Shown piece by piece: positions 3,501-47,265 of a stretch of 47,265 nt of DNA. Every line of letters begins with the position of its first letter. Positions within the stretch are counted from its first letter, which is position 1. Below the pieces are notes generated by a model. That model saw nothing but the letters and a program-made list of their open reading frames with translations. It was not told the DNA's origin and did no database searches. The DNA comes from Octopus bimaculoides. Lineage: Eukaryota. Location of the stretch: NCBI RefSeq assembly GCF_001194135.2, contig NC_068996.1, forward strand, positions 30,675,749 through 30,723,013, written 5' to 3'. A program made the translations under genes and the position numbers.

Positions 3501-3589
3501 CCTTGTTCTTTCCGATCATCAGAAAACGTTCAGCGGAGGTTTTGAGCACGTCAAACACTTCCGACCAATTCTCATCAAATCGGGCATTT

Positions 3590-4402: not shown

Positions 4403-4604
4403 CTATGTTACATTACATATATATTTCCTCCTACTTATGTATCAAGTACATTATTTTTGTTTCCATAATCTGTGTTTATACATTACACTGATGCTATTAT
4501 CACATGTTGTATCAAAAGCATGTGTTGTTATATGATTTGTGATATATTTCAGTACAATGTATTGTAGAGTACTTTTTACAAACAAAAACAAGAGTATCAG
4601 CTAT

Positions 4605-10934: not shown

Positions 10935-10967
10935 GTATGTATGTATGTATGTATGTATGTATGTATG
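10935..10967. repeat. (TATG)n microsatellite
   Basis: Directly visible. Confidence 0.9.
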
Positions 10968-14037: not shown

Positions 14038-16137
14038 TTATTGTTGACGTGAGCGGCGCACTTTGTCTTCCTGTTGTCGGGAATGTCGATGGCGGTTTTG
14101 GCGGCGCTGATAGTTTGCATCATTGCTGCCTCCACTAGGGGCAATGCTAGAGCCACCACCACTGTGGTCACTATTATGATGAAGGCGACGTTGATGCTGA
14201 TGATGCTGTTGTTTGTGAGGACGATGTTGCTGCACGTGCTTATCATATTTAACATTGTTAACATCAGCAGCATCAACAACTACTGTAGGACCAGCATCAG
14301 TTGTCATAGTTCTATCAGCATCAGCAGCAGCATCAACATCAACACGAGATCGTGGAGGGAGTGGTGGTGGTGTTGGTGAAGCTGATGAAGATGCTGGTTG
14401 TTCTTGTGGTGTTGCAGGTGCCGCTTCCACCATGTAACTGCCATGTCTTTTACCATTGCTGTTATCATTGGGATGATACTGGTAGTCAGTATGACTGCGA
14501 TGACGCTCTTTGTCCTCCTCATCATTTTCTTCATTGTAATAATCATAATAATCGTCATAATTATTGTCAGCATGTGCTTCTGCGTCATCATAGTCATAAA
14601 ATTCCCCATATTCTGCATCATCATGTTCTCCACCACCTGGCAATGGGGGTACTGCCTGGTCAGTATGACCTATCCGACCATGCCGAGCAGCATGCATGAG
14701 TAGTGCATAAACCTCTCGATGTCCACTTTTCAGTGCAACACGCAGGGGTGTCCGACCATAGCGGTCAGCACGTGATGGATCAGCTCCATGTGCAAGCAAA
14801 GTACGTACCACACCAGCATGTCCCTCTTGTGAGGCTACACACAAAGCTGTTGCTCCCTGGCTGCAAGCACGGTCTACAGCAGCACCACGTCTCAATAGCG
14901 CGCGTGCCACACCTGCGTGGCCACGCCAAGCGGCTGATTGCAGTGGTGTGCGTTGCTCATTGTCAGCGGCATCTAAATCTGCACCACCCACATCTGCAAG
15001 CAGGCGTACCATGTCAACATGACCTTGCCAGGCAGCCACATGTAATGCAGTTCGTCCTTCTGGGTCAACACCTTCCACGTCAGCGCCATTGGCCAGCAAA
15101 AAGGCAGCCATGCGCACACGGTTCTCCAGTGCTAATACATACAATGTTGAGCGGCCATCGGCATCATGGTAATTTGGATCAGCCAAACATCCAGTTCCCA
15201 GAATTGAGCCCAATGGTCCGCCACCGCCACCACCAACACTGTAGCTAATGGGTCCACCACATAACCGCTGTTTTCTCTTGATGGGAAGAGGTACAGCAAC
15301 AGATGTAGTGTTGGCAACGGTGGGGATGGGAGCAGATGCTGCAATAGCAGTGGAAGGAGTAGAGGTGACAGCAGCACTGAAAGCAGAACTAGTAGCAGCA
15401 ATAAATGCAGAAGGTGTAGAGTCTGCTGCAAAATTGGCAACAGAAGAAGGTATGGCAGAAGCAGAGTTCCGATGTCGAATTCGGGTTGGAGAGCGGTGAC
15501 GTGGAGGCAGTGGTGGTGGTGAGGGTGAAAAGTTACGGCAGGTATCAGTTTCTTCATCTGCTCCTGGTACTTGTGTTGGTGGTGGTGGTGTCGAATGTGA
15601 ATGCTGTGAAGGTGACTGTAATTCAGAATCTGGGTCCAGTTGCAAATGTGTCTGTGCATGTAGTTGCGAGTGTGAGGGTGACTGTGTGGGTGAGTGTGAT
15701 GGAGAGTGAAGCAACAGTGTCTCTGGTGAATGGAGTGCTCGAGAGTGAGGCTGTGGTTGAGGGTTGTAGCCACGGCGCCGGCGCCTGCGGACGCCTAGCT
15801 GTGGTGGCAATGGAGGGGATGAAGAAAATGGTTCACCATCCCCACCTTCTCCTACACCCCCACTTCCCCCACCAACCAAAATGAGACCACAGCCTCGTTC
15901 GGGAGGATAAGGGTGTCCAAGCAGCAAAAGGCTGGCTACAGCTTCGTGGCCTTCCAGGCAGCTGACTCGTAGTGCTGTCTTGCCATCATGTGAACGCTGA
16001 TCCACACTAGCACCATGTCGTAGCAGACCCTCCACTACAGAGAGATTTCCCTCCTGGGCTGCTAGTATGAGGGCATGGCGACCGTCATTGTCTGTCTCGT
16101 TCACTTTTGCACCGTGTTCAATCAGTATGTCACAGAC
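14038..16137 (-). CDS. ANKRD50: ANKRD50 last coding exon (699 aa plus TAA): 7 ankyrin repeats, a 244-aa insert and a low-complexity tail
   Basis: Acceptor TTTGCAG|GTC at 16138/16137. [30 protein letters not shown] continues the ankyrin repeat left open by the previous exon (AAYEGHRK|). Also contains [30 protein letters not shown]. Stop TAA at 14040-14038. Confidence 0.92.
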
Positions 16138-17082
16138 CTGCAAACAGATAGAGATATAGATAAATATATGTAGATGTATTTATATGAAATACACTCACAC
16201 ATACACTCACATGCACATATGTATGTATGAAACACAGATCAAATATATGAAACAAAAACACTTTGAACAAGCCTTCTTCCTCTTCACAAGCATACATAGA
16301 CATTGGTCTAGCCTCAACCCTATTCACTACCAAGTAACATAGAAACATTCTTTGTCATAAATCTTCAACACTCAGTCTCTAATACTTCAATAATGTCCAC
16401 ATTACACTCTGTATTCTAACTTTATTCTGAAATATACATGCATGCTGTAAAATCCATTCATTCCATTTTATCTCTTTTACCTGAAGTTCATCAACAATAA
16501 AGTCTGTTTATGATCAACTTCTGATTCTTCTACACTGAAGCCTCTATCACTCTCCAAACAACTATCAGCTATTTGATCATCTCAGTTTCTGTACATCATA
16601 CATCTTATATAAAGTCATCATCTTAAATTACGTTTTGTATACTACTCCTCTAGGCTCTTATACTTATCCCACACTGATTCTGCAAAAGATAAAGTCCTAA
16701 TCATCCCGCTGCCACCTATCTATCTACACCAGTTCACAGCCATGACGGATACACTGACACTAAATATGCATGATCTTTTTCTTACCTAGAAACCTATCCC
16801 TAACCAGCCGTCATTGACTCTGTACCTACTGGATTAAGTGATCTGCCACCAAGACAAATCACAATACAGTCTCCTAAATATAAAATATACTTACTATTCA
16901 ATATTCAAGTACTTCAAATGAAATAAATGGTGGGAGTTCTGACAAATGTAAGTTACAATAGCACCACCAACAGAAACAGCAACAATGACTCAAACAATCG
17001 AATCAAAACTGACAATGGCACCTCCAACACAAATAGTAGATGTTAAAATAGAAAAATGAAAAGAATGAGTCAAGTCTCTCAC

Positions 17083-18918
17083 CTTTCTATGTCCTTCGTA
17101 TGCAGCCATGTGTAAAGGAGTCCACCCAGCATTATCCTTATGCATTTCATCCAGCCCTCGCTCCAGTAGAAGTCCCACAACATCTGCATCACCTTGGGCA
17201 GCAGCCACGCTCAGCACAGTGCGTCCTTCCCCGTCAATGGCATCAACTGCAGCATTCCAGTAAAGCAACTGACGAACAACACCTGCATGGCCAGCTGCTG
17301 CAGCTGCTAGCAGTGGTGTACGTCCAGCAGTGTCGGCAGCATCAACGTCTGCATCCCATTCTAAAAGCAACTCACATGCTTCTTCACGACCTTCATGAGC
17401 GGCTACCAACAGAGGAGTGGCACCGTCAAGGTCTCTGTGGTCAACAAACGCACCCCGGGCAAGCAGCAATGCTACAACTGCATCATGGTTTTGATGCTGG
17501 TATTGCTGCTGCTGTTGCTCTTCTTGTGCCATGCCATTGCTGATGGCAGCAGAGGAGACGTTCTGGGGTGGGTAACTTTGATCATGTCCTTGCTGTTGGC
17601 TGAATGCACTTGCTCGTCCTTCCTTTTGTCTCTCTAGTTTGCTTATATCATCCACTATTTCTCCCTCTGTGCCAAGATCATTGTCATTGACGGTGGGGTA
17701 TTTCTTTTTCCCCCTTGTTCCTGCCTCTAAACAACCCCTTGTACCATCATCATTGTCTTCATCATCATCCCGAATATTTACATTTCCAAGCTGAGTATCA
17801 TATTCACACTCATCAGCATCCTGATTGACTGTTCCAGGAGAAACGAATGCAACAAAACCTGTGCCACAAAGTGAAGCAGCCACAGAGAGGGCAGTTCGGC
17901 CATCAGCATCTTCATGGTCTACAGATGCACCAACATCAAGGAGATGTTCTACAATGGAAGCATGTCCCATGTATGCAGCAGCAATGAGAGCAGTTCGTCC
18001 CTCGCTGTCGCAGCGGTTCACATCAGCATGATGTGCAAGGAGACAACGGACAGCAGATTCTCGGCCACCCCATGCAGCAGCACGTAATGCTGTTCTTCCA
18101 CCAGCATCACAACGGTCAACCTGGGCACCAGCAGCTAATAAAGCTTCAACAACACCAGTGTGGCCACCCCAGGCAGCAGAACGGAGAGGTGTCCAGCCAT
18201 CATTATCAGCTGCATCAGTGAGCTCTGGAGCTTGAGGTGACCCGAGAAGCACTTCTACCACTGCCAGATGTCCCTGACGGGCAGCTATATTTAGTGCAGT
18301 CTGGCCGTAAGCATCTGAAATGCAAGGATTGGCTCCTAGGGCAAGTAGTTCAACAGTAGCTTTAGCATCTCCACGTGCCGAGCATTCATGCAACATGGCA
18401 GAAAGGTCTGCAGCTTCATTTTCTGCATCAGTTGTCCCTATGCTTTCCATCGCTTCACCACTGCTGCGAAGTTGGCGAAGTCTCTCCAGAGTTGCATTCA
18501 GCCGATGCTCATATATGAAATCTTCTTCAGCATCATTATTTGCAAGGGAGATGTGTTCATCTTCTACTTTTGCTTCGTCTTCTATATCACAAGGTACGTT
18601 GACATTGGTGGCAGTGGTGGGACTAATATTGGTGCAGGTGAGGTTGTTTTTGCTATCACTGACACCACTAAAACCATCATCATCAACATCATCATTATCA
18701 TCATTGTTGTTGTTGTCACGATTACGAATGGATGATATAGTCGGGGTTGCTAAGGTGGGTGATTGGGAAGTTGGTGCCACTGTGCTAGGTATTTCATCAA
18801 GGACAACACTGTGAGGAGAGCTTTCATTTTGGCTGTGAGGTGACATGCTTACATTACTGGAGCGATGGTGCTTGTGATCATTGTTGTTGGTGGAGTTGTT
18901 TGATACAGCTTTTTCATA
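17083..18918 (-). CDS. ANKRD50: ANKRD50 middle coding exon (612 aa): linker and about 9-10 ankyrin repeats
   Basis: Acceptor TTTTCTTTTCTTTTTCAG|TAT at 18919/18918 and donor AAG|GTGAG at 17083/17082. Contains [79 protein letters not shown]. Confidence 0.92.
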
Positions 18919-18983
18919 CTGAAAAAGAAAAGAAAATATTACAGGAGGGTGCACACAATATACCATTGTTCTCTCTTTCTCTC

Positions 18984-18989
18984 TCTCTC

Positions 18990-19023
<34 letters not shown>

Positions 19024-19230
19024 TGTATGTATGTATGTATGTATGTATGTATGTATGTATTATGTATGTATGTATGTATGTATGTATGTATGTATGTATG
19101 TATGTATGTATGTATGTATGTATGTATGTATGTATGTATGTACGTATGTATGTATGTATGTATGTACGTATGTATGTACGTATGTATGTATGTACGTACA
19201 TACGTATGTATGTACGTACATACGTATGTA
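18984..19230. repeat. (TATG)n/(TACG) tetranucleotide microsatellite just upstream of the 18918 acceptor
   Basis: Directly visible. Confidence 0.97.
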
Positions 19231-19631
19231 TATATCTTTATATATATATATATATTAAATATAATAAATGTGAATGTCAGTGTGTCACACTTTTTCAACT
19301 TTATTCCTAGAGGCCGTAGCCCAACATATCATACCATTTTGTGAGTAAATTAAAAACATTCCAGGCTGAATCCGCACCCACAATCCTGAAATTTTGAATT
19401 CCCAAGTTTTCAATACTGTGATTGTTTTTGGCAATTATTTTATGTGATTTTTTTGTGACAAATTTTTGTAGAATAACAATTTTGATAGCTTGGAAATAAA
19501 TTTTTTGTATGTGATTTTTTGCGATGAATATGATCATCAATGAGATATGACTTTGGGTGAAGCAATTGTAACAAATTCTCCAAAACAAGTCAGAGATCTG
19601 TTTGCAGATCTTCCCATTTAGAGTCAGTAGC

Positions 19632-19865
19632 CTTTAATTGTTTCATATATATTCTTTTACTTGTTTACTGTGGCCATGCTGGAGCACTACCTTTAGTCAA
19701 AGAAATCAACCCCAGGACTTATTCTTTGTAAGCTTAGTACTTATACTATTGGACTCTATTGCCAAACTGCTAAGTTACGGGGACGTAAACACACCAACAT
19801 TGGTTGTCAAGCAATGGTGGGGGAACAAACACAGACACACAAACATATACATACATGTGTATGTG
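19632..19865 (-). mobile_element. SINE-family fragment
   Basis: Reverse complement of 42030-42225; also similar to 22878-23100. Three copies are present in the window. Confidence 0.7.
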
Positions 19866-20202
19866 TCTGTGTAAATAGTGTTTGTAATGTATTTCATATT
19901 GTTATTAAATAACCACACAATCATGTAGTGTATTTTCAGCTATTCTTTCTTATTTGCTCTTTCTCCTCGCACTTGCCCCACCCTTACCTGTTTCCCGTTT
20001 CCCCTCACCTACCTCTCCTCCACCTGATTCCTCCAATGCACCATTCTCCAAGCCTCTAAACAATCTACTTCCCTAGCCATCATCATACACCACATCAAGA
20101 CCCAGTCCTTACACTGGCCTATAGTTTGTGACAAAAACCCTCTCCAACGTAAATATTTGTATTTGTAAATTCTGTTGCTGGGAATCGCTTACAATACTTT
20201 GC

Positions 20203-20434
20203 TTAACCGATCAAGTCCCACTGTCCTATAAATAGGATACTAAATGAAAACATTCAATAAGCTATATCACATTGTCTCAGTGTCCTATTTATAGGACACC
20301 AAGTTTTTCCATTTCTACTTGAGGTAAAGGAATTTTAATAATTATTTTTTTTCATTTTAATGTATTTTCAATCATCTGTAAAAATTTAAAAGTAATATTC
20401 AAAGATTTAAGTACTCTGGAATTTAATGGGTTAA
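20203..20434. mobile_element. Putative TTAA-flanked (piggyBac-like) MITE
   Basis: TTAA at both ends. Degenerate terminal inverted repeats (TTAACCGATCAAGTCCCA.. vs reverse complement TTAACCCATTAAATTCCA..). Internal inverted pair TGTCCTATAAATAGGATA (20222-20239) / TGTCCTATTTATAGGACA (20281-20298). Confidence 0.5.
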
Positions 20435-22089
20435 CTGATTCTCTAATGTAACCATCTCTGGCAGACATAAATTATATAGGATCTTTGCTCCTAATATATA
20501 ATCATTACAATTTCTCCTCATCTTAGCTAAAATTAGGGTAGAGATTTTGCATTTCAGATCTTAATGCAGAGAAGTTTAAAAATGGAATGATTAAATGTGG
20601 AGAGCTAACTGTATTAGAGGAGGAATAGTGGGGTTATGGGGTGGGGTATCAAGACAGGGAATGGTGGGAGGAGATAGATAGTTCAAGAAGAGTGAGGGGT
20701 TAATACAACCCAATGTTAATTGCATCCATAGGGCCATATATTGTGATGAACTAAATCTACCAACATTATTATGGATTGCTGAGCTCCCAGAAATAGCTGT
20801 CAGACTTATAACACCTTTCTTCCACCCCCTTTAATTTTCTCTGTCGTTTGTACTATATCGTTTATACTTTGTGTAAGTTGGACCTATTAATATTTATCTG
20901 TAAGTTGGACCTATTAATAATTATCTATGTATTTATTCTTGAAAATTCATCATCTGAAAGTCTCCACCTTTTGTTTCCTCTTGTTTTGCATGTATACATA
21001 TATACATATTTTGTATTTAATACCCAAACTAATATATTTAATATAGTTGGTGTATCAAATTTGTTTATCCGCATAACTGCCTCTATACCTACTCAAATCG
21101 ATCCCTCTTATAGCCTTTCTTTACTTTGTGGAATGATCCCCTGTAAAGATACTGGAGTCAGTCTAAGTTTGAATCGTTTGAGCACTACTAAGTGTCTTCT
21201 ATATGGAGAATCTTTGGATCTCATCTGTGAACTATATATATATATATATATATATAGTCAATAAGGCATATATCAGAAAAGAAGCACACTCTAAAGAATA
21301 GAGTAGTAATTATTATATATATATATAATTAATTAATTATTTGTAGGGTTCATTAGAATCAAGGTATTTTAATATTAAGAACACTAAGCAAGGGATGAGA
21401 TCTGCACATCTGTGTATATACCATATATAAACATGCTTGCATATACCCATGCATATATGGACATATTCATACACTTACCTATACTTGTATATGAACACAT
21501 CAATATACACAAACATATAGATATACATGTACGTGAAATTATATACCCATCCACACCAGCATGCTGTTTCACGATCCAATGTAAGATCCAGATCGAACAT
21601 GAAGAAGGTTCCGGGTGAAGTGTTTACACAAAGAAAGAGCACAGATGAGTTAAAGATTCACTACAGCTCTTTCAGACGTATTTTTTTTTATTGATGAATA
21701 ATTTGATTACATCATGAAAAAACCGTTTTCTTCAGGTGAATTAAAATATTAAAATGTGGATTCGGCATCAATAAAGAAAGTGAAAACACACTGAGGTTTA
21801 GCCAGATTTCATAGGCCTATGGTTGATAAAGCAATCAATGGACAGTGCCACATTAAATAATTTCTTTAAATAGATGGTCAGAGATAAGAGATAAGAGGAA
21901 GACAGAGAGAAAGAAATAGGGAGGAGAAGGAAGAGAGGCTAGATTAAGGATTATCAGTATAGTGTAGTCAAGAAAAATGTCCTGATGTAGAAAGAGAAAC
22001 TATTGCTGACTTATAGACCATCAAACAGGAACATTTATGATAACACGTACTTATATACACTCATACGATTCAAAGCGTCCAGAAGATTC

Positions 22090-22651
22090 AGCAGGGCTTT
22101 GGTGATGATGCCATGGGCAAAATTCAGATAAAGGAACCGTACAACTGTTTCAAACATGGCTGTACTTCATTGGAGAGTAAGGCTCATCCAGACAGGCCAT
22201 CCACAAACCCAAACGAGGAAGTGGTTGAGAAGGTTCAGCAAATAGCCATGGAAGACTGTCACATAACAATCCAAGAAATTGCTCATGAAGTGAGAATAAG
22301 CATGCAGTTAGTGTGTCCCATTTTATTGGAGAATTTGTGTATGCAGAAGGTGCTGGACTGCAAAACCATGATCTAGACTTCATGAAGACTATCATCATTG
22401 ATGATGAGACATGGATTTATGGTCTCTGGTCAATGTGTTCAGTCATCTTGCATGTAAACAAAAATCTGGTGAGCATGCACTACACATCCGTGCTCTAGGT
22501 GTAAACAGTTGGGAACAGTTCGGAACTGGCACAAACATTTCCATGTATGTGCAGGAAGGGTAGCATCACCTTCCACCCAAAGGACTTTACCTCACGGCAT
22601 TAGTTTTGGCAGGTAAAAATAAAGTCAAATACTTTTTGAATGTACCTCATA
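22090..22651 (+). mobile_element. Internally deleted mariner transposase remnant
   Basis: QQGFGDDAMG...RPST...EDCHITIQEIA (HTH region), DFMKTIIIDDETWIYG (first catalytic Asp region), and a TIR-like end ...TACTTTTTGAATGTACCTCATA. Confidence 0.7.
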
Positions 22652-22877
22652 TATATGTACCCTTGTTCTGACATCATGTAATGATTGCAAATGTAAATCA
22701 CCATCATACAAGCATTGTTGTTTGCTTTCATACTTTTGTGGAAAACATGCCTGGTCATGGGAAAAGGTGAGGGTTGGTGACAGGGAGGGCATCTGGTTTT
22801 AGAAAAATTTACTTCAACAAATTCAATCTGACCCATGAAAGCATTAGAAAGTAGACATTAAATGATGATGATGATAT

Positions 22878-23100
22878 CTTTTATTCTTTTACTTGTTTCA
22901 GTCATTTGACTGGGACCTTGATGGGGCACCACCTTGAAGGGCTTTAGTTGAATGAATTGGCATCAGTATGTATCTGATACATATGCTATCAGTCTCTTGC
23001 TGAACCACTAGGTTTCAGAGACATAAACAAACCAATATCGATTGTCAAGCAACTGTGGAGGACAAACACAAACAAAAACACACACATGGGTATGTGTATA
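22878..23100 (-). mobile_element. SINE-family fragment
   Basis: CTTTTACTTGTTTCAGTCATTTGACTG... is the same family as 19632-19865 and 42030-42225. Confidence 0.65.
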
Positions 23101-23109
23101 AATATATAT

Positions 23110-23169
23110 NNNNNNNNNNNNNNNNNNNNNNNNNNNNNNNNNNNNNNNNNNNNNNNNNNNNNNNNNNNN
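23110..23169. other. Assembly gap (N-run); further gaps at 24751-25436, 43002-43392 and 44314-44641
   Basis: Runs of n, mostly flanked by (AT)n-rich sequence. Confidence 1.
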
Positions 23170-23790
23170 TATCGTTGTCGTCATCACCATCGTTTAACGT
23201 TTACTTTTCATGCTGGCATAGGTCGGATGGTTTGACTGAGAACTGACAAGACAGGAGGCTGCATTAAGCTCCAATCTGATTTGGCAAGGTTTCTACAGCT
23301 AGATGCCCTTCCTAATGCCAACCACTCTGAGAGTGTAGTGGATGCTTTTATGTGCCACCAGCACAAAAGCCAGTTAGGTGACACTGGTATTGGCTATGCT
23401 CAAATGGTGCTTTTCACATCCCACCATCACAGGTGCCAGTTAGGCGGCACTGGCATCAGCCACACTCAATGGTGCATTTTACGTGTCACTGGCACGGGTG
23501 CCAGTCAGGCAGCACTGGTGTTGGCCATGCTCATATGGTGCATTTTATGTGCCAACGGCATGGGTGCCAGTCAGGCAGCAAAGTTGTCAGCCACGACTAC
23601 GATTTCACTTGGTTTAACAGGTCTTCACAAGCATGGCATATTGCCCAACGATTGAAGAGTGCTTTTTCAAATGGGCCAGTTATGCGACACTGGCATCGGC
23701 CATGATTACAGTCGCATTTGACTTTCTGGGTCTGCTCAAGCATGGCATATCTCCAAAGGTCTTGGTCACTTGTCATTGCCTCACAATTCT
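23170..23790 (-). mobile_element. RTE LINE 3' UTR and tail fragment
   Basis: Begins with the reverse complement of the (ACG)n(ATG)n tail ...CGTTAAACGACGACGATG seen at about 47205-47232. It carries the same GTGCCAGT/GGCAC tandem subrepeats. Confidence 0.75.
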
Positions 23791-23841
23791 ATACACATAC
23801 ACACACACATATATACATACATATATATATAATAATAATAA

Positions 23842-24300
23842 TAATAATATAAATAATATATAAATATATGCATATATCCATACATATATGTACATACCTA
23901 CATCTATATGTATACATACATGCATATATGACTACAGGACATCACAAAAAAACGTTAAACACAATGAGAAACGAAAATAGAAGACAAACTCTTTTTCGAA
24001 CAACGAAAAAAACAGAGAAACAAGACATGCAACATAAAGAATATTTCCCTTGCCTTCGAAACGCGGAGTAGATGGACAGGGACAACTGATGAAAGGAAAT
24101 ATTCTTTATGTTGCATGTCTCGTTTCTCTGTTTTTTTCGTTGTTCGAAAAAAAGTTTGTTTTCTGTTTTCGTTTCTCATTGTGTTTAACATTTTTTGTGA
24201 TGTTCTGTACCCATATATGCATGTATGTATACATATAGATGTAGGTATGTACATATATGTACGGATATATGCATATATTTATATATTATTTATATTATTA
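23842..24300. repeat. Fold-back inverted repeat: arms of about 207 bp (23842-24048, 24095-24300) and a 46-bp spacer
   Basis: The arms are reverse complements with scattered mismatches (roughly 90% identical by eye). Confidence 0.9.
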
Positions 24301-24363
24301 TATGATCGAATGCCACGCATCCGTTTCCAAGTAAGTTTTTATCTATCTATCTATATATATATA

Positions 24364-24563
24364 TATTTATCTTCAGTACAGATATTTTTACAATCGAACA
24401 GAATCTCGTGCTAGTTGTCTTCAACCAGTGAACACGTGCACGTGATTCTATCCATTATAAAGATTAAAAGTCTTAGTTTTGGCACGGTTCACTGGTTGAA
24501 GACAACTAGCACGAGATTCTGTTCGATTGTAAAAATATCGGCAATCTGTACTGAAGATAAATA
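24364..24563. repeat. Second fold-back inverted repeat with a perfect 53-bp stem
   Basis: 24381-24433 is the exact reverse complement of 24487-24539. Pairing extends outward across a 7-bp indel. Confidence 0.95.
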
Positions 24564-25489
24564 GATACTTTTATTTTGGAAGTATTGATTTTGAAACTAT
24601 AGTCTGCAGATAATCGAGGTATGTACAATTTTCACTGGTCTAGCCCACCTGTTTTTGCTCTGCTGAATCCGTATTTGAGAATTTTTTAAGTGAGCTTCTT
24701 CTAGCATATTGACAGACTGGTCACTGGTCAATCTTATATACACAAGTACTNNNNNNNNNNNNNNNNNNNNNNNNNNNNNNNNNNNNNNNNNNNNNNNNNN
24801 NNNNNNNNNNNNNNNNNNNNNNNNNNNNNNNNNNNNNNNNNNNNNNNNNNNNNNNNNNNNNNNNNNNNNNNNNNNNNNNNNNNNNNNNNNNNNNNNNNNN
24901 NNNNNNNNNNNNNNNNNNNNNNNNNNNNNNNNNNNNNNNNNNNNNNNNNNNNNNNNNNNNNNNNNNNNNNNNNNNNNNNNNNNNNNNNNNNNNNNNNNNN
25001 NNNNNNNNNNNNNNNNNNNNNNNNNNNNNNNNNNNNNNNNNNNNNNNNNNNNNNNNNNNNNNNNNNNNNNNNNNNNNNNNNNNNNNNNNNNNNNNNNNNN
25101 NNNNNNNNNNNNNNNNNNNNNNNNNNNNNNNNNNNNNNNNNNNNNNNNNNNNNNNNNNNNNNNNNNNNNNNNNNNNNNNNNNNNNNNNNNNNNNNNNNNN
25201 NNNNNNNNNNNNNNNNNNNNNNNNNNNNNNNNNNNNNNNNNNNNNNNNNNNNNNNNNNNNNNNNNNNNNNNNNNNNNNNNNNNNNNNNNNNNNNNNNNNN
25301 NNNNNNNNNNNNNNNNNNNNNNNNNNNNNNNNNNNNNNNNNNNNNNNNNNNNNNNNNNNNNNNNNNNNNNNNNNNNNNNNNNNNNNNNNNNNNNNNNNNN
25401 NNNNNNNNNNNNNNNNNNNNNNNNNNNNNNNNNNNNATATATACATAAATACATACACACACACACACACACACACAAACATACATATA

Positions 25490-25625
25490 TGATGGATTTC
25501 TACTAAATCCACTCACAAGGCTGGACATATAGTAGAAGACACTTGCCTAAGGTGCCATGCAGTGAGGCTGAACTCAAAACCAAGTGGTTGGAAAGTTAAC
25601 TTCTTACCACATAGCCACACCTGTG
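25490..25625 (-). mobile_element. tRNA-derived SINE head, inverted
   Basis: Reverse complement reads GTGTGGCTATGTGGTAAG...GAGTTCAGCCTCACTGCATGGCACCTTAGGCAAGTGTCTTCTACTAT...CCTTGTGAGTGGATTT, the same family as 41833-41965. Confidence 0.7.
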
Positions 25626-25744
25626 CCTATATGTATATATAGTTTTTGTTTTATCATTTTTAAAAATTTTGTAAACCAAAAAATAGTTAGCTTTGAAAAC
25701 AATGTAAAAGTAGTAGGAATCTAATATACAACTTAGAAGCAAAT

Positions 25745-25960
25745 ATTGATTTCAAATTTTGGCACAAGGCCAAACAATTTTGGGGTGGGAATAAATCAAT
25801 TACATCAACCCCAGTGTACAAGTGGTACTTATTTAATCGACCTCAAAAGATGAAAGGCAATGTTGACCTTAGCAAAATTTGAACTCAGAATGTAAAGACA
25901 GGTGAAATGTCACTAAGCATTTTAGTTAGTGTGCTAATGATTCTGCCAGCTGACTGCCTT
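25745..25960 (-). mobile_element. tRNA-derived SINE with a Nin-domain-like core
   Basis: The minus strand has A-box-like TGGCAGAATCATTAG and B-box-like GAGTTCAAATT, then TTGCCTTTCATCTTTTGAGGTCGATTAAATAAGTACCA..CTGGGG, which resembles the recalled Nin core. Confidence 0.55.
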
Positions 25961-26150
25961 GTTATAAGCAAATATTATAAACAATTTACAACAAACTGAA
26001 AAGGACAAGAAGAAGAAGAAGAGAAAGAAAACAAAATGGTATTGAATGTGAAACAACAACAGATCTTCAATTTATAAGTTCAAAAAGAGGAATGTTACAC
26101 ATAAAAGGACTGCCTCATACATAAATATGGAAATGAAGATTTTTGCTTAC

Positions 26151-29100
26151 CTTTCCAGGAATTTTTCCATTTTCTTGATGATCTCCAGCATAGTGTACAG
26201 GTCTATTGGATAATTTCTGAAAACTACCTGCATCAATTCTGATATCGGATCTTCCTTTGGTAGAGGTGATATCGTTGATGACTTCATCAATAACAGCTGC
26301 ACATGTGGCATCATCATCCATGTAATGACTGTCATTGAAAGGTGTATCACTATCAAGGTAATGAGTCCTGTGTTCAATGTCAACAGTCCTATCAGTACAA
26401 GTGTTTTTGTTGTCATCGCTATGATAGTGAGTCTCGACTGCAAAGTGAGTTGCAACATGATTGCAGGAGCAGTGGTCAAAGTCACTGTCAGATGTGTTGT
26501 CAGGGGTAGATTTTGAGGCTGTTGCTCCTGCATCTACAAGAAGATGCAGCAATCTCTGGTCTGCTGGAATTCCTATTCGTAAACAGCTTTCCAGGTTGAT
26601 ACCTGATGCAAGCAGCCAGAGCACAAGATGCTCATGATGAGTCATATGACCCTGCAATGAATGTGGTTGCTGTTGTAATTGTTGGGTGTAATGTTGGTGT
26701 TGATGTTGATATTGTTGCTTGAGATGTAGAAGGCGGTGTTGTTTTGATGTTGGTTTTGGTTTGGCTTCTGCAATAGTAGTTGTCATAGGACTTGCACTGG
26801 TAAGGATTCCTTTATGGACGGATGGGGAAATAATATCATGACAAGGTGGGGGTGGGGCAAGAACAGTATCGGCTGTATTAGCAGAGGTTGAGCCCTGTGC
26901 AGCTAGCATGCTGGTAGTTTGATTCAGCAGGAATGGGAGAGAGGTTGTTGCAGTGGCTGTAACAGTGTTGGTGGTGGTGACCATTGGAGAACGTGTAACA
27001 CCACTGGTGGAAACATTTACTGTTGTTGTTGTTGATGTTGTTGCCATTCCCAAAGGAGGAAACTTGGCTTGAACAAGATGCCAGCCAAGTTCCTGCACCT
27101 CGGCTGCAGTAAGCCAACCACGATTATGACCACAACTCCGGACAGATTGATGGTATTGTCCTACATCTGGCTTTTTCCAACATCTGCTACCATTAATATT
27201 TTTAACTAACTGGCCATTGTTTGGCACCAGAGATGGACATTTACTAGGAATCATGAGTGATGTTGAAGCCATCATGGCCAGAGCAAGTGCTCCATGACCT
27301 TCACCAGCTGAACACAGAAACCTTGGTGTGCAATGTTTCACATCAAGAAGCCATTCAGCAAAGCTGTGATGGAAAAAGATGCATGCTGGTGAACTTTCAT
27401 ATAACTGTGCTGAGGAGAGATGCTGATTAGGTTTATTACTTTGACATAAAGGGACGTGATGGTGTTGGTCAGGGTGGTATTGCTTTTGGTGATTTTGATG
27501 ATATTGTTGCTGTTGTAATTCATGGTAGTGGTGTTGTCGTCGATGTGGAGCAGCCATCACTGTTGATGTTAGCCTTCTACTTTCTCCTCTTCTATTACTT
27601 TCTCCTAATCTTCCCATACCTCTTCCAGTTCCTCTGCCATTTAATTCTCCCACTCCAACCTCTTCTCCCCGTGTCGATACAACCACCTCCCCCAATCTAC
27701 CTTCTCTATCTCCTCTTACTACAGCTGCTCTCCAATCTCCTCTTATTACTGACCCTGACAAAGAGCCAAGACTAGATGATACTTGACCATCACTATTGAA
27801 AGTCAGATTTAGATTGAGTGCTGACCATGATGACCATGGTGAAGACCAGAAACTCGATGATGAAGGCAATTTGTTGAAATGCTGACAACAATGACAATGC
27901 TGATGGCTCTTGCGATGATTATGATGACAAGGATGATAACTGTAAGGATTGTGACAATAATGATGACTAGGAGATGCTGTCGGCACAGAAGTAGCAGGTC
28001 TTGTAGTAGTAGTGGTAGTGCTGAAGCAAGGTGCAACGTTAGAACAAACACATGAAGAACAAGAACGATGAGAACAAAAATTGCAGAAGGGATGGCAGGA
28101 GGTAGTAGAATAACTAGAGTAAGAGGGAATAGTTACAGCATCAGTGGTGGTAGACTTTGGCATATGACTTGCCATTTGAGCAAGAGGAAGTTTGGTGTCA
28201 CCATGCCCAGATTCCTTCAAACTTGGCTCCTCATCTTCAAGGCTGTCTATACCTCTTAGATGGGTATGGACGGTATTGGGCTGTATGTGATCATGCCCAT
28301 TCTCTCCTTGGACACCAACACTTCTGAGCTTAACAAAGCTAGGTTCTGTATGGCTATGCTTCACATTTTCCAGATTGCCAATCTCTGCTGGCTGAGTGAT
28401 TCTAGGTTCCTTGCGGTCACGCCCAACATCCTCCAAACTGCCAAGTCTCCTTAACTGGGCAGCACGAGATTTTAAGAGTCCACGCCCACATTCTGCCAAA
28501 CCAGCTCGGCCTACCATTCTGGTGGGCCAAGACTCTAGGCCACGATGCCCATTTTCTTCTTGACTGCCAGTGGATCCTCGCACCTGTTGATGTATGACTT
28601 CTTGCAGAACATCTACACTACCCTCTTCTCCCACACGAATACCAACAAGCAGACGAGACAATGAAGCAAGCCGACGCTCAAAGTCATGGCGAGTGAGATG
28701 GGCATCACGTACAACAGCACACAAATAGAGCTGGTCAATGGTGAGAGGCCGGGCTGCAGCAGCAGCAGCTGCAAGTACAGCATCAAGCAGAGGGCGTGCT
28801 TCGGCAAAGCGACGTGGAGCATGGGCAAAGCGACGCTGGCAGAGCCACAGGTAGAGGCCATTAAGCGTAGGTGGAATGTGTCGTACTTCAGCCAAACTCA
28901 CTGACCCATCAGCAACTCCATCAAGCACTGTCTCTAGGTACAGCATGCAGCCGTTGCTCTTGATGTGCAGTTGGTTGAGTGTGTGTGCCGCCTGCCGGCT
29001 GAGATGGCGCCGTAAAGCTGGCTCAGCATCTAACCGGCACAGGATGTATCGCTGAACATCACGCACTACATGTGAGCGGCGGAGATCGTCGAGTGCAATA

Positions 29101-32100
29101 CGACGTAGACCAGAACCAGCAAAGAGTTTAGTCACAGGTTTGCAATGTTCACGTGCTGAGCAAAGAAGGAATAACCAATCAGGAAACAGTGATCGTGTGG
29201 CAGCTAGTAGCTCAGCAATTGTACTAATAGTTTGGTTGGGTGTAGGTGTTGTTGTTGAAGGAGAAGCCTGAGTTCCAGGCATTGTAGGTGTGGATGAAGT
29301 AGCTGTGTTTTCTGTAGTTTGTTGTTTTGAGATTGGCTTTTGAACCCCAGGCACAGTATATGTTGCTGCTGTTTTAGTTGTTGTTTGTGATGATGAGATT
29401 TGAGTACCAGGGGCAACAGGTGGAGAGGCTGTTCTTTTTGTTTTTCTTGTCTTTTCTGGTGTTACTGATGTTGGGTTTTGAATCCTGGTCACTGATGGAG
29501 ATGATGCTGTTTTTGCTGTAGAAGTTCGAATTCTAGAAGCAGAAGGAGAAGCTGTTTTTGATTTTGTTTGTGTTTCTGATGTTGACATTCGATTCCCGCT
29601 ATTTTTTGATGTTTTTCCTGGTGTTGAAGTTGTGCTTTGAATCCTGGATAAAACAGATGTTGTTTTGCCTTTTGATTCTGAGGTTGATGTTCGAATCCCA
29701 GATAAGTAGTGTTGACGTTGTTGTCGCCGAGAAGGGCTACCCCTTGTTCCTGTTTCTGTTTCTTTGTTGTTGTCATTCTGATGACAATAATTCACTGCTT
29801 GACCTGAACTTGGCCTTTGTAAATGGCGTTGCTGCTGTTGTTTTTGTTGCTTTTCTTGTTGGTGGTAAGGGCTTGTCTCTGATTTTTCTTCATCTTGGTT
29901 CACCAACTGACTCATGTTGGATTTATGAAGATGATGGTGCTGCTGTTGCTTTTCCCCATCTCCATCTCTATAACAATAATAATAATAGTCTTCATCATCA
30001 TCATCATCATCATCATTATCATCATCATGACAATAATAACTATCGTCTTCATCATTTTCTGCCATCAGTAAATGTTTTGCTTTGAACTTACCTGTCTTCA
30101 GTTTTTTCATGTCTTCATCTTCTGCTTTCTTCTGTTCCTCATTATGATAATAACAATAATAATCATCATTTTCATCAAAATCTTCATCATCTTTTGCATT
30201 TAGCAAATGCTTAGGTTTCTCCTTGTTCACAGCCAGACTTTTCTTTTTCTTTTCATCTTCTATCATCTTTTTCTCTTCTTCATCATGATATTTATAGTTA
30301 GAATAATCATCAACTTCATCATCATAATCATACTTTGCATTTGGCAAATGCTTCACTTTGTCTTGGCCCAATTTTAGATTTTGCTTTTTCTTATTTTCTT
30401 GATCTTCTGTTTTCTTTATTTCTTCTTTTTTCTTACTATCATAATAATAATAATCATCATCATCATCATCATAACCATCTTTTGCAATTGGCAAATGCTT
30501 TACTTTGTCCTGGTAAATCTTCAGCATTTGCTTTTTTTTCTTAACTTCTAATTCCTCCAGCTTTTTTATTTTATCCTTCTTATTTTCATCATCCAAATAA
30601 TAATAATTGTCATCATCGTTATAATCATCTTTTGCATTTGCCAAACATTTCACTTTGTCCCGGTCAATTTGCAACTTCAGCTTTCTTTTCTTTTCTTCTT
30701 TCTCTATCTTCTTATCCTCTTCTGCTCTCTTCATCCTAACATCATCCTCATCATCATCATCATCATCATCATCATCAATATCGTCATCATAATAATAATC
30801 ACAATAATCGTTATAATAATCATTATACTCATCCACATTTAGCAAATGTTTTGATTTATCCTCCACAACCTTCTGCTTTTTGTCATCTTCTTTAGTCTTC
30901 TTTCCATTATCATCCTCTTCCTCATCATCATCACCGTCATCATCATCATCATCATAACCACCACTATAATTCCCATAATCATTCCATGTCTTTCCCTTCT
31001 GTTTCTTTTTCTTATCGTCTACTTCTGTCTTCTTCCCATCATCATACAAATAATCATTATTATAATCATGATCACCTTTACAATCATCATAGTAATCTTG
31101 TACTTTTGTCAAGCATTTCGCCTTATTTGCTAACATAATCAGCTTCTTATTAATTTCGTCTTCTTCTTCTTCCTCTGTCTTTTTCCTATCTTTTTTCTTA
31201 CGAACATAATAATAATCTTCACCCTTATGATCATCATAATCTTTCTCTAAATTCTGTAAATATTTTGCTTTATGATCTACCATTTTCAGTCTCTTCTTTT
31301 TCATCTTTTCTGTCCTATTCTTAGAGTCATTATCAACAACATCATCATCATAATGACCATCATGATCATCATCATGATCACGATCATCATCATCACCACT
31401 ATCACCACCATCATCATCACCATCTTCTCCAAAATTTTCACTTTTATAAACATCATAATCATTTTCTACATTCTTCAAACATTTCACTTTATGCTCATCC
31501 TTTCTCAAGTTTTTCATTTCCTCCTCTCTCTCGGTTTTGTCTTTTTTCCAACTTCCATCATAATAATAATTCTCACCTTTATAATCATCATAGTCATTCT
31601 CTATGTTCTGCAAACATTTTGTTTTATGATCCACCATCTTTAATTTCTCCTTCTTTTTCTCTTCTAATTTCTTTTTATCATTATAAACATCAAAACCTTC
31701 AACCTTACAATCAGCGTAATTATCCTCTAATTTTACTAAATGTTTCACTTTATTATCCACTAGTGCTAGCTTCTTTTTGTTCTCTTCTGTCTTCTTTCTA
31801 CCATCAACATAATAACTATCCTCACCCTTATAAGCACCATAGTCATTCTCTAAATTCTGAAATTGTTTCACTTTATCTTCTACCATCTTTACATCATTAT
31901 TAATGTTTTCATCTTTTGCAACTACTATCTTCTCCTTTTCAAGATCATTACCACCACCACCACCAACAACAACAACATCACCATAATAATTATTTTCACC
32001 ATTACCATGATGACAATTGCCACAGTAATGATGATGACTATAAGAACAATGGTGATGATGATGATAGTGATGATTAGGGTCATCACAAGAATGTTTTCCC

Positions 32101-34430
32101 CCTTCCACTACAACACCAATGTTGTTATTTTGATGATGGCAATTTCCATGTTTGTGATGGGGATAATGATGATGAGAATGATAATGCTGATGAGGAGGAC
32201 AACGACGACGATGATGATGATGATTATAATTGCTATGGTGTTGACAACAGCTGTTATTATTCTGCCCCAGCGGCTGTTGATGGTGATGATGTAACTGTTG
32301 TTGACCTTGCAAACTGTTATCTCTAACGTGATCCCTGTCATCATCAACAACACTAACACTAGCATCATCGGGAGGTGCTAACCAACCAGGACGCAAGAAA
32401 GATTCATCAAGTGCATCAACAACTAAAAGGAGGCTATGTGGTGGTGGTGATACAACTGTGGAAAGTGGTAACAGCACAAGACGGCGGAATGCCTCAACAG
32501 CATCACTCTCAATCATTTCTGCTTGAAGGTAGGCAGCAGTTGGCAATATGCTGTGGTCCCTGTCACTGTTCCTGGAATTGTTGTTAGAATGAACTGTCAG
32601 ACAAGTTCCACTACAGCAGTTATGACAAGTTTTACTACTACTGCATTTTTTCTTAATGTTTTCCCTCCTTGGGCTTAGTACTGTATTGTTTTCCATCTTT
32701 TTATTCTGATCTTCCTTGTTTAACTCCGTTTTCTCTTCCAATGCTGTCATCACTATATTGTCAGAATTATGGGGAGACACCTTAGATGTCATAATAGGAT
32801 TAAGAACATCCTCATCATTTTGGTGATATTGGTTCTCATTGTTGTCATCTTCAAGCACTTGTTCCTCAACTTTTTTTTTCTTTTCCTGCTCTTTCTCCTT
32901 CACTTGCAGTTTTTCCTTCTTTTCATTCACTTCTTTCTTTACTTGTACTTTGTCCTTCTTTATCTTTTTCTTCTCCTGTTCGGTCTCTTTCTTCAACTGT
33001 TGCTTGTCTCTTTTTATCTTTTTCTTATCTTCCTGTTCTAGTTCTTTCTTCAAATGCAACTTATCCCTCTTTTCCATTTCTTTCTTTTTCTCTTCTTGTA
33101 CCTTGATTTTCTTTCCAGGTGCCTCTTTTGTTGCCAATGCTAACACCTCATGTGATGAATCTTGTGTTGCTGACATCAAAACATCTTTTGTCTGAGCTTG
33201 ATCCACACCAGTGTTAACCATTCCTTTCACAGTCTTACTATTACCTAACTTCTCACTCTTGACATTACTCTCACTCTTGCCTGTCATCCAATGGCTGTTG
33301 TTTTGGCCATGTCCATTCTTCCGTGTCACACACAACCCTAGAGCAGCAAAATCATTGGCTCTAGATGTTTCTTCAAAACCTACTCCAGTATTAACCTCTA
33401 CCCCAGCAGCTTGATCATCATAATCATGTCTATTCTCCAAAACAAAATAATCTCTTGTTCCAAATAACAACTCATCATCATCATCTTCTACTTCTTTTTT
33501 GTCTGCCCCTTGTTGTTGTTGTTGTTCATTTTCTCCCACCCCGTATTGTGCCATTGGGGCTGTCATTTCCATTTGTTTATTTTTATTTCTTGTTGCTATG
33601 GTGACTGATTCTTCATTTCCATCATCATCATCTCTATCTTCATCTCTGTGACAACAGTGATTGGCAACATTTTGATCAACATGTTTTTCTACTTTTTCCT
33701 CTTCACCATTGTCATCATCATCCTTCATATTATGATTGCAGTAATAATATTCATCATCATGATTACCATCATTGTTACTGTCATCACCACCATTGTCATC
33801 ACCATTGTCATTTTTGTTGCTATAGCAACAAAATCCACAACCAGTACTATAACAATTATAACTACTACAACCACCACCATCACCACAACAACAACTACTA
33901 CATCCACTGGCACAACATGTTACCTTGTCATCAATTTCTGTCATGGCATGTTCAAGAAACTCAGCATAGCCCTCAATCAGGTTAGATCTCCTGATCTGCT
34001 CGACAACATTCAATACAAAGCCTGAGAGCGACAGTGTGCGTGCATCATGTGCTTGGCAGAAGTGATAAGCAAGAACACGCCTGTTTAAGGCATGCTGCCT
34101 TTTCATTTTGCCCTCCTCTGGTGGGGCCACAGACCCTGTCACTAGGGGAGATGATGCAGCTGCAGGGCCTGCTAAGGTGGTGCGGACCGTTGTTGGTGGC
34201 ACTGGTGGGGACAGTGCAGAAGTAGCGGCAGTAGTATTGACAAGAGGTTCATGCCACACATTCAGTGGAAGGGGTGAGGAAACAGTAGAAGGCTGTGGTA
34301 GTACTGGTGTGGACAGTGATGCTCCTGGTAGTGGTGGTGGTGAATCCTGCAGTGAATTCAGGTTGGTCATATCATCATCAACATCATCACCATCACCAAC
34401 ACCATCATCATCATTATCATCATCATCATT

Positions 34431-34466
<36 letters not shown>

Positions 34467-36317
34467 ATCATTGTTGTTGTTGGTCGTGGTGGTAGTGTTG
34501 TTATAACAACGCCAGCGCCGACAGCAGCAGCAACGTGAAGGCACACATGACCTGTGAGGGCGAGAATGAGCATGAGCATGAGTGTGAGACTGAGATTGCA
34601 TGTGAGGCTTGGGTTGAGTGTGAGTTTGAGTTTGAGCATGATAAGGGTGACTGTGGGGTTGAGTTTGTGTGTGAGGTTGAGTGTGAATTGCGTTATTTAT
34701 GGTGTTGGATTCAGTAGAAGTAACAGTGGTTACTTTCACTGAGGACTTGGAGTCATCTGCTGGTGATGTGGTGTTCATAATAACACCGTCATTATTCCTT
34801 CCTGATGTAGCATTTATACTGAGTTCATCATTGTTGTTTGTTGAATTAGTGGTGTTCACAGTGAGATTATTGTTCTTTGGTGAAGTTGTAGCACTCATGC
34901 TGACCTCATCATCATTGTTGTTTGCTGCTGTGGTGTTCATGCAAAGATTAATGTTTTTGGGATATGATGTAGTTTTCATGCTTAGGTCATCATTGTTGTT
35001 TGGTGATGTTGTGACGTTCATGCTAATGTCATCATTATTTTTTGGTGATGTTGTGAGCTTCATGCTGTGATCATAGTTGTTGTTTGTTGATGTGGTGTTC
35101 ATGCTGAGCTCATCATCACCACCTATTGTTGTCTTTGCAGCCGCATCAGCTGAGACACAGACAAAGGTAGGGACACAACTGGGATTGAAACGTCCTCCTC
35201 CTCCTCCACTACTTCCATCTCTTCTTCCTTCTTTCCCTTCTCCTCGCTGTTGTTGTCGCCATCCTGGCCCTTCTTCTGTTCCTTTTCCACCAACTCCACT
35301 GCTACCATCAGTGGCTAAATTTGAAACTGTGATGCGGTGGCCATCTCTGTCTTTGTCAATTCCACAACTGACATCACCATAGCCACCACTAATACCACCA
35401 CTGCTATCACCTGGATTTGAAACTGGGATCCCAGTGCCTGTTTCTTTATTTCTACTAGGTCCAGTTCCGCTATCACCATCAGGGGAGCTGAATCCAACAC
35501 CTGATCGAATCCCAGGACTACGGATAACACCTCCACCAGCAACTGTGATACGGCTATCCTTATTTCTTGTGGATCCAGTACCACTGTCTTCATCATTAGA
35601 GCCAAATCCAGGACGACAAATGACATTACCAACACCTCCAACAACGGGACCTGAATTTGAAACTGTGACCTGAGTATCTCTATCTTTACATCTACTGTTT
35701 CCAATACCACTATCACCATCATTGGAACCAAACCTAGCACTGGAGCCACCCCCAACAGCAACATTAACAACACCTGGTCTGGCCCCAGAAACACAAGCAA
35801 CACTACTACTTAAAGGTGGATTTAAAACTGCAACCCGTCCATGCCTGTCTCTATCTCTGTCTCGAGTGGATCCAATACCACTATCACCATCATTAGAGCC
35901 AAATCCAACACCAGGTCTGATCCCAGAACCATAAACAACACCACCAATACCAACATTGCTTACAGTAGAGTTTGAAACCATGACCCAGCCATCTCGGTCT
36001 CTGCCACTATCACTGTTCGATCCTGTAGCTGCTGTGGCACCACCAGCTGGCCACACCAGTTCACAGAGCAGTGCAGACTTTCCACACCCAGCTCCCCCAG
36101 TAACTAATACACCACCTCCTGGGGCAGCTGCCGCTGCTGTTGTCAGGGCATGTTCTCCTCCTGGATGGTGCACAGATTCAATTTCATTGTTACTATGGGC
36201 AACTACAACAGATGAAGAAGATATTGCCCCTTCATGGCGTTCAAGTGAGCTGAGGATCTTTGCATAGGCCCATTCACGCCCATAGAAACGCTTACCTTGG
36301 AGAAGGCAATGAGACAT
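26151..36317 (-). CDS. ANKRD50: ANKRD50 first coding exon (3,389 aa): P-loop NTPase-like domain fragmented by giant low-complexity inserts
   Basis: Real ATG at 36317 in an A-rich context, stop-free for 10,167 nt, donor AAG|GTAAGC at 26151/26150. Walker A GGAGCGKS at 36098-36075 and Walker B LLVVDALDE with Asp at 32417. Confidence 0.88.

Positions 36318-47232: not shown

Positions 47233-47265
<33 letters not shown>

Follow-up and report, generated by a model that had tools for sequence, protein, structure and literature searches.

An ANKRD50-type gene of Octopus bimaculoides predicted to encode 4,700 residues, with large low-complexity inserts interrupting a conserved core

Results and Discussion

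An ANKRD50-type gene in three predicted coding exons

The DNA analysed here, referred to below as the window, is a stretch of 47,265 nucleotides from Octopus bimaculoides (contig NC_068996.1, positions 30,675,749 to 30,723,013) that is AT-rich (about 39% G+C) and holds four runs of N. Judged from its sequence, the minus strand carries an intact animal ANKRD50 gene that appears to be stretched to 4,700 residues around a core of about 1,200. The open reading frames (ORFs) of this strand, one of 3,400 codons at 26115-36317 and two more at 16990-18966 and 14038-16143, were joined through GT/AG sites, all in phase 0, into a model of three coding exons (Table 1) with a coding sequence of 14,103 nt. 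Exon 1 ends at the donor AAG/GTAAGC (last exon base 26151) and exon 2 at the donor AAG/GTGAGA at 17083; the acceptors are TTTTTCAG directly before 18918 for exon 2 and GTTTGCAG directly before 16137 for exon 3. The predicted junction of exons 1 and 2 lies in a non-conserved linker.

When the inserts were removed, the concatenated core (1,225 residues) gave one high-scoring segment pair, with 53.6% identity and 1,186 bits, against P0038, the best homologue, which is insert-free and derives from a Logan transcript-like contig (sample SRR8281674). The identities to ten other full-length ANKRD50 proteins were 44-53%. A global alignment to P0038 with cheap gap extension yielded 1,206 aligned columns at 57.5% identity, and the closest relative reached is about 54-57% identical to the core. 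A profile hidden Markov model (HMM) made from 11 full-length ANKRD50 proteins was placed on the predicted protein in collinear order: columns 1-58 fell on residues 1-92, 40-114 on 716-792, 116-163 on 1261-1309, 165-366 on 2350-2559, 369-418 on 2976-3025, 399-485 on 3192-3283, 504-697 on 3535-3740, 701-910 on 3864-4073 and 914-1220 on 4320-4657. Between exons 1 and 2 only columns 485-504 remained uncovered, and these correspond to a linker that is variable in the family.

The Walker A motif GGAGCGKS (residues 74-81) aligned to GGPGCGKT of P0038, the Walker B motif LLLVVDALDE (residues 1296-1305) to LIILVDSIDE, and the sensor-1 arginine was found within LFLLCSAREH, aligned to LLLVCSSRKQ. The lid domain AAA_lid_TANC1 (Pfam PF25520) was detected at residues 2410-2494 (E = 2.1e-14, 53.9 bits against a cut-off of 29.1), and the winged helix HTH_TANC1 (Pfam PF25521) was recognised with E = 1.4e-18 (67.6 bits against a cut-off of 27), its match being split by insert 4. 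The ankyrin array of exons 2 and 3, which is collinear over HMM columns 504-1220, matched Pfam Ank_2, Ank and Ank_4 with E values of 1e-36 to 1e-57; by eye, the ankyrin repeats of P0038 and of the model correspond repeat for repeat, including the first repeats in exon 2. The core encoded by the three exons would thus be a STAND-type P-loop NTPase with a lid and a winged helix, followed by about 19 ankyrin repeats.

The full-length homologues found by the search were 1,259-1,587 residues long, the named ones coming from ticks, fishes and a mole, and insert-free N-terminal fragments (P0008, P0012) were also returned by the database searches. All named matches were ANKRD50 or ANKRD50-like, except one JGI 'ankyrin repeat protein' and one 'uncharacterized protein ankrd50l'. 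The vertebrate and arthropod ANKRD50 proteins (P0049 from Galemys, P0045 and P0050 from Anguilla, P0039 and P0043 from ticks) and P0038 share with the present gene the domain order (N-terminal helix, P-loop NTPase, TANC1-type lid, TANC1-type winged helix, helical linker, ankyrin repeats) and about 19 ankyrin repeats, at 45-57% identity over about 1,200 residues. However, these references are 1,260-1,590 residues long, whereas the present protein is predicted to have 4,700, and the approximately 3,500 insert residues occur in none of them. The end-to-end collinearity supports the assignment of the locus, as read from sequence, to an ANKRD50-type gene within a comparison set of 11 full-length ANKRD50 proteins.

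An earlier reading of the same DNA, made without database searches and called here the sequence-only reading, had described a protein of 4,700 residues in which ANKRD50 blocks stay in order but are separated by inserts, and had put vertebrate ANKRD50 at about 1,400 residues. The spliced three-exon model matches that length exactly, the order of the blocks was borne out by the collinear HMM and BLAST placement, and the lengths of the references agree with the expected size.

Table 1. Features of the predicted ANKRD50-type gene, in window coordinates, with the insert sites on the insert-free homologue P0038
Feature	Coordinates	Strand	Content	Site on P0038 (residues)
Coding exon 1	26151..36317	-	3,389 codons; ATG homologous to family Met1; STAND NTPase, lid and winged-helix blocks A-G, inserts 1-6, first linker part	
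Core block A	36042..36317	-	aa 1-92; N-terminal helix and Walker A; holds the extra 34-aa insert	
Extra insert before strand beta1	36132-36233	-	aa 29-62; 34 aa relative to P0038, inside block A	28/29, inside short helix 28-31, just before strand beta1
Insert 1	34083..36041	-	~650 aa; G/S/D/R-rich units of ~40-57 aa, N/T-rich units of ~14 aa; H/Q/T-rich, poly-N/D and P-rich tracts	56-62, loop following the P-loop helix
Core block B	33942..34082	-	aa 746-792; strand beta2 and next helix (RRVLAYHFCQAHD...EGYAEFLE)	
Insert 2	32538..33941	-	~468 aa; Cys-rich, D/N/G-rich, long K/E-rich charged tract	112-130, helical connector
Core block C	32391..32537	-	aa 1261-1309; includes Walker B	
Insert 3	29226..32390	-	~1,050 aa; His/Cys-rich tract, 11 degenerate units, Asp/Tyr runs, S/T/P-rich tail	164-173, low-confidence loop following Walker B
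Core block D	28641..29225	-	aa 2365-2559; sensor-1 strand, AAA_lid_TANC1, first half of winged helix	
Insert 4	27381..28640	-	420 aa; S/G/H/R-rich, Cys/His tracts; splits the HTH_TANC1 match	358-366, wing hairpin of winged helix
Core blocks E, F, G with inserts 5 and 6	26523..27380	-		
Insert 5	~27114-27272	-	~47-53 aa	~405-412, inter-helix loop; global alignment opens after 412, at a helix start
Insert 6	26631-27059	-	143 aa; T/S/Q/P-rich	424-431, inter-helix loop
Intron 1	18919..26150	-	both gene-internal assembly gaps, interspersed-repeat copies, (TATG)61 microsatellite	
Linker across intron 1	18484-18918 (second part)	-	first part in exon 1, second in exon 2	
Coding exon 2	17083..18918	-	612 codons; second linker part, ankyrin block 1, insert 8, start of ankyrin block 2	
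Ankyrin block 1	17866-18483	-	exon 2	
Insert 8	17488-17865	-	~123 aa; exon 2	730-735, helix-helix turn of an ankyrin repeat already atypical in the family
Coding exon 3	14038..16137	-	699 codons and stop; rest of ankyrin block 2, insert 9, ankyrin block 3, non-homologous tail	
Insert 9	15184-15921	-	~246 aa; P/S/G-rich; exon 3	943, inter-repeat loop of the ankyrin array
Extra insert after last ankyrin repeat	14587-14694	-	aa 4482-4517; 36 aa relative to P0038	
Non-homologous tail	14038-14460	-	aa 4561-4700; D/Y/H/Q/R-rich, ends ...RRSRQQ	

Size and composition of the inserts

The residues outside the core numbered 3,541 out of 4,700. The overall composition differed between the inserts: insert 1 is rich in G, S, N, T and D, insert 2 in K, E, D and N with an additional Cys-rich tract, and insert 3 in D, K, E, Y, N and H. 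All inserts were hydrophilic, with Kyte-Doolittle means of -0.5 to -1.7 compared to about -0.7 to +0.9 for the core blocks. In insert 3 we distinguished 11 units spaced by 42-89 residues (mostly 45-50) with the motif K-x-K-[H/C/Y]-L...DYDD; half of the codons of this insert belong to the NAT and AAR/GAR families. The G+C content of inserts 2 and 3 (0.34-0.37) is at the level of the genomic background. Tandem Repeats Finder reported period-3 arrays and degenerate units of 42, 81 and 150 nt within the inserts: the 150-nt units occupy 30302-30670 in insert 3 (2.5 copies, 75% matches), and those of 81 and 42 nt lie at 34825-35116 in insert 1. These units form the DNA-level trace of the protein repeats and suggest the action of unequal crossing-over beside triplet slippage.

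No similarity was found among the inserts, nor between the inserts and the repeat copies or transposons of the window. The distinct compositions together with the absence of mutual similarity are consistent with independent growth of the inserts. In this respect, and in the estimate that most of the protein (about 3,400 of 4,700 residues) is insert, the sequence-only reading agrees with our counts. Its coordinates for nine inserts also held, the motif positions agreeing within a few codons, but its list was not complete, since the additional inserts of 34 and 36 residues had been missed.

For inserts 1-6 and the linker, database searches gave no relatives. An exact look-up of the 3,400-residue exon-1 product returned no match, and a word-indexed protein search with residues 2540-3610 found no homologue of inserts 4-6 and the linker. 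Inserts 1 and 2 had no match among the best 8,000 candidates of the word-indexed search with residues 1-1260, which low-complexity words crowd to such an extent that the core homologues were missed with this query as well. Insert 3 had no homologue in an exhaustive HMMER scan of 1.84 billion representative proteins, in which the query consisted of block C, insert 3 and part of block D, and 133 of the 133 hits were in the flanking core only.

Sequence evidence that the inserts are probably coding

The non-core stretches (inserts and tail) contained no in-frame stop codon, compared to 234 expected from the base composition. Shuffling insert 3 by itself 500 times left 90 stops on average and at least 59 in every case. 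The other five frames held 2-203 stops per insert, and in introns and flanks about 15-30 stops per kb were counted in each frame. The G+C content of the inserts was 0.49-0.63 at the first and 0.25-0.36 at the third codon position, showing the same codon-position periodicity as the core. Moreover, in the coding frame the repeat copies gave a ratio of nonsynonymous to synonymous differences (pN/pS) of 0.48 in insert 3 (11 units) and, for two types of unit in insert 1, of 0.57 and 0.47; the shifted frames gave 0.82-2.2. No consensus donor/acceptor pairs were found at the insert borders, and exon 1 was not richer in such sites than the intron.

The simplest reading of these data is that the inserts are translated, i.e. 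that ribosomes read through them. The open frame speaks for translation but does not in itself point to a function of the insert sequence. The inserts may also be disordered; this view and that of translation are based on the open frame, the composition, pN/pS values near 0.5 and a low-confidence AlphaFold2 model: insert 3 modelled without an alignment had a predicted local distance difference test (pLDDT) score of 50 and consisted of isolated helices of 25-40 residues separated by disordered Asp/Tyr linkers.

Insert sites on the predicted fold and in other family members

To place the inserts on the fold, residues 1-476 of P0038 were modelled with AlphaFold2 from a 14-sequence alignment (pLDDT 79), and the large gaps of the global alignment were mapped onto the modelled secondary structure; the sites of inserts 8 and 9 were placed by the canonical ankyrin motif, as the model covers residues 1-476 only. 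Foldseek matched the modelled 476 residues to MalT, NLRPs, NOD2, Apaf-1/CED-4, Avs and ORC/Cdc6 with E values of 8e-7 to 1e-3. The likeness to STAND/AAA+ ATPases of solved structure (MalT, NLRP3/7/9, NOD2, Apaf-1/CED-4/Dark, Avs, ORC/Cdc6) is at the level of the fold only, with 10-15% identity. None of these ATPases is known to carry inserts of kilobase scale in the stretches that separate Walker A, Walker B and sensor 1.

The mapping on this model supports a placement of the inserts within the stretches that connect secondary-structure elements, or at the borders of these stretches, and in ankyrin turns (Table 1). With such positions the domains could still fold while the inserts loop out, in line with the proposal of the sequence-only reading that disordered tracts loop out at tolerant positions, for which insert 2 is the least comfortable case.

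A family comparison set of 175 retrieved proteins was used to find out how often the same sites are interrupted. The spacing from block to block is normally about zero in these proteins. However, inserts of 129-302 residues were present between blocks B and C, at the site of insert 2, in P0062, P0081, P0083, P0094, P0112 and P0140; inserts of 63-85 residues followed Walker B in a mole and an eel, the wing of the winged helix carried 177 residues in P0074, and blocks E-G were interrupted by 160-164 residues in P0061 and P0062. The present gene carries about 640, 470, 1,040, 415 and 200 residues at the site following the P-loop helix and at these sites, all together. The occurrence of inserts at the same sites in other family members marks these sites as recurrent insertion hot spots. 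The inserts of the eight ANKRD50-like proteins (P0081, P0083, P0094, P0112, P0140, P0062, P0061 and P0074) are likewise hydrophilic, but they are 2-10 times shorter, occur at one or two sites in each protein and are unrelated in sequence; unlike the present gene, these eight proteins have no large insert following the P-loop helix or Walker B. In every hit of the exhaustive HMMER search, block D was located no further than about residue 990 from the N-terminus, which means that there is no comparably inflated relative among the 1.84 billion representatives.

In the literature searched, we found no description of recurrent hot-spot insertion in the ANKRD50-like STAND family or of such inflation in cephalopods, and no paper linking ANKRD50 with octopus. 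The sequence-only reading had remarked that the architecture seemed undescribed. It is less unprecedented than this remark implies, since other family members have inserts of 130-302 residues at the same sites.

Low-complexity inserts within conserved domains are also known from Plasmodium and other Apicomplexa and from Dictyostelium, which have AT-rich genomes (PMC7534687, PMC4770516, PMC3188802). According to these reports, the protist inserts are similarly rich in Asn, Asp and Lys, their codon bias tracks the AT-rich genome, and they are usually read as driven by slippage and weakly selected. The protist trend is described there as proteome-wide, whereas the present case is an animal gene with far more heterogeneous inserts (Cys/His-rich, S/T/P-rich and with units of 45-50 residues). 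We regard the present gene as an extreme case within a known gene family and an extreme form of a phenomenon already known, namely low-complexity inserts in conserved domains, and not as a new kind of system.

The C-terminal tail

The tail of P0038 contains FTQQIQQ and KRNGIVTNPNY and terminates with KKETPL. This conserved C-terminal tail of the reference proteins is missing in the present gene: FTQQIQ, NGIVTNPNY and ETPL followed by a stop were absent from every frame of the window, and an HMM search of the flanks was also empty. A downstream exon encoding the conserved tail within the window was thus sought by motif and HMM search and rejected. Either the tail is encoded by a 3' exon outside the window or the PDZ-binding motif has been lost in this orthologue.

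Vertebrate ANKRD50 associates with SNX27-retromer and WASH and takes part in recycling from endosomes to the plasma membrane (PMC4231307); the sequence-only reading had likewise named its action with SNX27-retromer in recycling from endosomes to the cell surface. The role of vertebrate ANKRD50 with SNX27-retromer has also been confirmed by another report (PMC9038204), and ANKRD50 has been described as a PDZ-binding-motif (PDZbm) protein (PMC6754446). The lack of the PDZ-binding tail weakens a direct transfer of the SNX27-binding mechanism to the octopus protein. By homology of its sequence, the core would probably still act as a nucleotide-dependent scaffold in endosome-to-surface recycling.

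Origin of the inserts and alternative explanations

We consider it probable that the locus is an intact coding orthologue of ANKRD50, the conserved core of which is interrupted by inserts that have grown locally and are translated through. About 11 low-complexity, hydrophilic and probably mostly non-globular stretches would then interrupt a core in which Walker A, Walker B and the sensor arginine are kept. Each insert would have grown locally and independently through triplet slippage (NAT and AAR/GAR runs) and tandem duplication of units of 40-150 nt, and its base composition would subsequently have drifted towards that of the AT-rich genome. The period-3 arrays, tandem units, codon bias and drift of the G+C content fit local growth by slippage and small duplications followed by divergence. 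The reading frame would stay open because a stop codon or a frameshift in an insert would delete essential downstream domains. Any constraint on the inserts themselves would be weak; they might contribute multivalent contacts of low affinity.

Several points weigh against this explanation. Exon 1 is an internal coding exon of 10.2 kb, a length that is unusual. The case for translation of the inserts is built on sequence features, and the pN/pS tests are modest, with few units that were anchored on a protein motif. Insert 2 is situated in a confidently modelled helical connector and not in a plain loop. In addition, the model is devoid of the conserved C-terminal tail and PDZ-binding end of the family, which may reflect an error in its 3' end or a different contact with SNX27.

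The atypical length of exon 1 could also point to the removal of the inserts from the mRNA as unannotated introns or exitrons, so that the main protein would have about 1,300-2,000 residues and the 4,700-residue product would be minor or non-existent. Exon 1 holds 13 GTRAG sites and 10 pyrimidine-tract/YAG sites that are usable in principle. Nevertheless, we regard this as quite unlikely, given that the frame is open over about 3,500 codons where 234 stops would be expected, while true introns of this gene accumulate about 15-30 stops per kb in every frame; the insert borders lack donor/acceptor pairs, the density of such sites does not exceed that of the intron, and the inserts show codon-position periodicity and pN below pS. 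Unlikely, too, is the possibility that selection, positive or purifying, acts on the inserts because they are not tolerated filler but functional modules (metal-binding His/Cys tracts, charged-helix spacers, S/T/P modification sites) which turn the protein into a giant multivalent or condensate-forming scaffold. The 11-unit motif K-x-K-H/C-L...DYDD has been kept despite nearly saturated synonymous sites (pS 0.68, pN/pS 0.48), periodic long helices are predicted in the repeat region of insert 3, and the inserts are chemically distinct from each other, all of which would suit such modules. However, no homologue of an insert was found elsewhere in the protein searches, inserts 2 and 3 have drifted to background composition, the structural confidence is low, and the measured constraint is weak and partly imposed by the anchoring of the units. 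The four N gaps and many repeats in the window, as well as the missing C-terminal tail, might even suggest an assembly artefact or a decaying or duplicated copy in place of a functional ANKRD50. We find this highly improbable: exon 1 is gap-free, the 14.1-kb coding sequence is unbroken, retains every catalytic motif and is 57% identical to orthologues, the gaps of the gene are confined to an intron, and a misassembly would not keep one frame over 10 kb.

Two further origins of the inserts were rejected. A transposon origin does not agree with the confinement of the repeats shared with the flanks to intron 1. The truncated ends of P0001 suggested that the inserts might mark ancestral intron positions, but this idea is undercut by the P0001 contig (L002), labelled '2x', which bears an intronless copy with apparent frameshifts. 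The introns of a JGI contig homologue (L003), one inside the P-loop and one between EGHRE and V, are away from the insert sites and also count against it. The latter position, EGHR[K/E] followed by V, is common to L003 and the exon 2/3 junction of the present gene. Both contigs carry insert-free ANKRD50 homologues, L003 (JGI) at 9723-12400 with the short intron inside the P-loop and L002 (ENA) at 9747-13161 without introns and with apparent frameshift errors.

If the inserts are translated, the protein would be an extreme natural test of the non-globular load that the nucleotide-binding, lid and winged-helix loops of a STAND ATPase can bear, with inserts of about 650, 470 and 1,050 residues falling between Walker A, Walker B and sensor 1. 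The mapped insertion-tolerant sites of the ANKRD50/TANC family could be useful for tagging and engineering. The gene also raises the question whether the host lineage inflates coding sequences generally. Since giant exons are easily mis-split into false introns, a general inflation would bear on genome annotation and, if true, on the origin of new disordered regions. The novelty is tempered in two respects: other family members have inserts of 130-300 residues at the same sites, and the inserts are putatively translated and putatively confined to one lineage. With the closest relative about 54-57% identical, the lineage-specific inflation proposed by the sequence-only reading is a conjecture. 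A more far-reaching view would be that the inserts are translated, conserved in one animal lineage (possibly cephalopods) and functional, so that a STAND ATPase has become a multivalent scaffold of 4,700 residues whose nucleotide-binding-domain loops bear modules of His/Cys-rich, charged-helix and mucin-like type, and that this is one case of an undescribed proteome-wide inflation of coding repeats in that lineage; we consider this combination unlikely.

Intron 1 and the flanking DNA

Two assembly gaps, 23110-23169 and 24751-25436 (686 N), are both situated inside intron 1. As the frame is set by the phase-0 donor and acceptor, the length of gaps within the intron cannot alter it. No conserved segments of the family are missing across the gaps, and a six-frame HMM search of the readable DNA of both introns and of both flanks detected no ANKRD50-like exon or remnant. 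A hidden exon or a missing ankyrin repeat in the gap-bearing intron was thus rejected for the readable DNA on the basis of HMM collinearity and the six-frame search; a small linker exon might lie in the 686-N gap. Repeat copies at 23170-23504 and 25441-25582 adjoin the right edge of the two gaps, and the assembly broke there because interspersed-repeat copies adjoin, which is the usual reason for such gaps. These copies recur in the upstream flank at about 46900-47234 and 41847-42017 with 70-82% identity.

No other host gene and no Rfam family were found in the 47-kb window. The flanks contain retroelement debris only (2805-4535, 4-267, 44691-45182 and 46028-46366), where the Pfam matches are a DUF7041 gag-like ORF and an RVT_1 fragment, and further ORFs resemble reverse-transcriptase fragments by eye. 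At 18990-19235, 71 nt upstream of the acceptor of exon 2, lies a (TATG)61 microsatellite (246 bp, 92% matches) that precedes an (AG)n tract and may influence branch-point or acceptor use.

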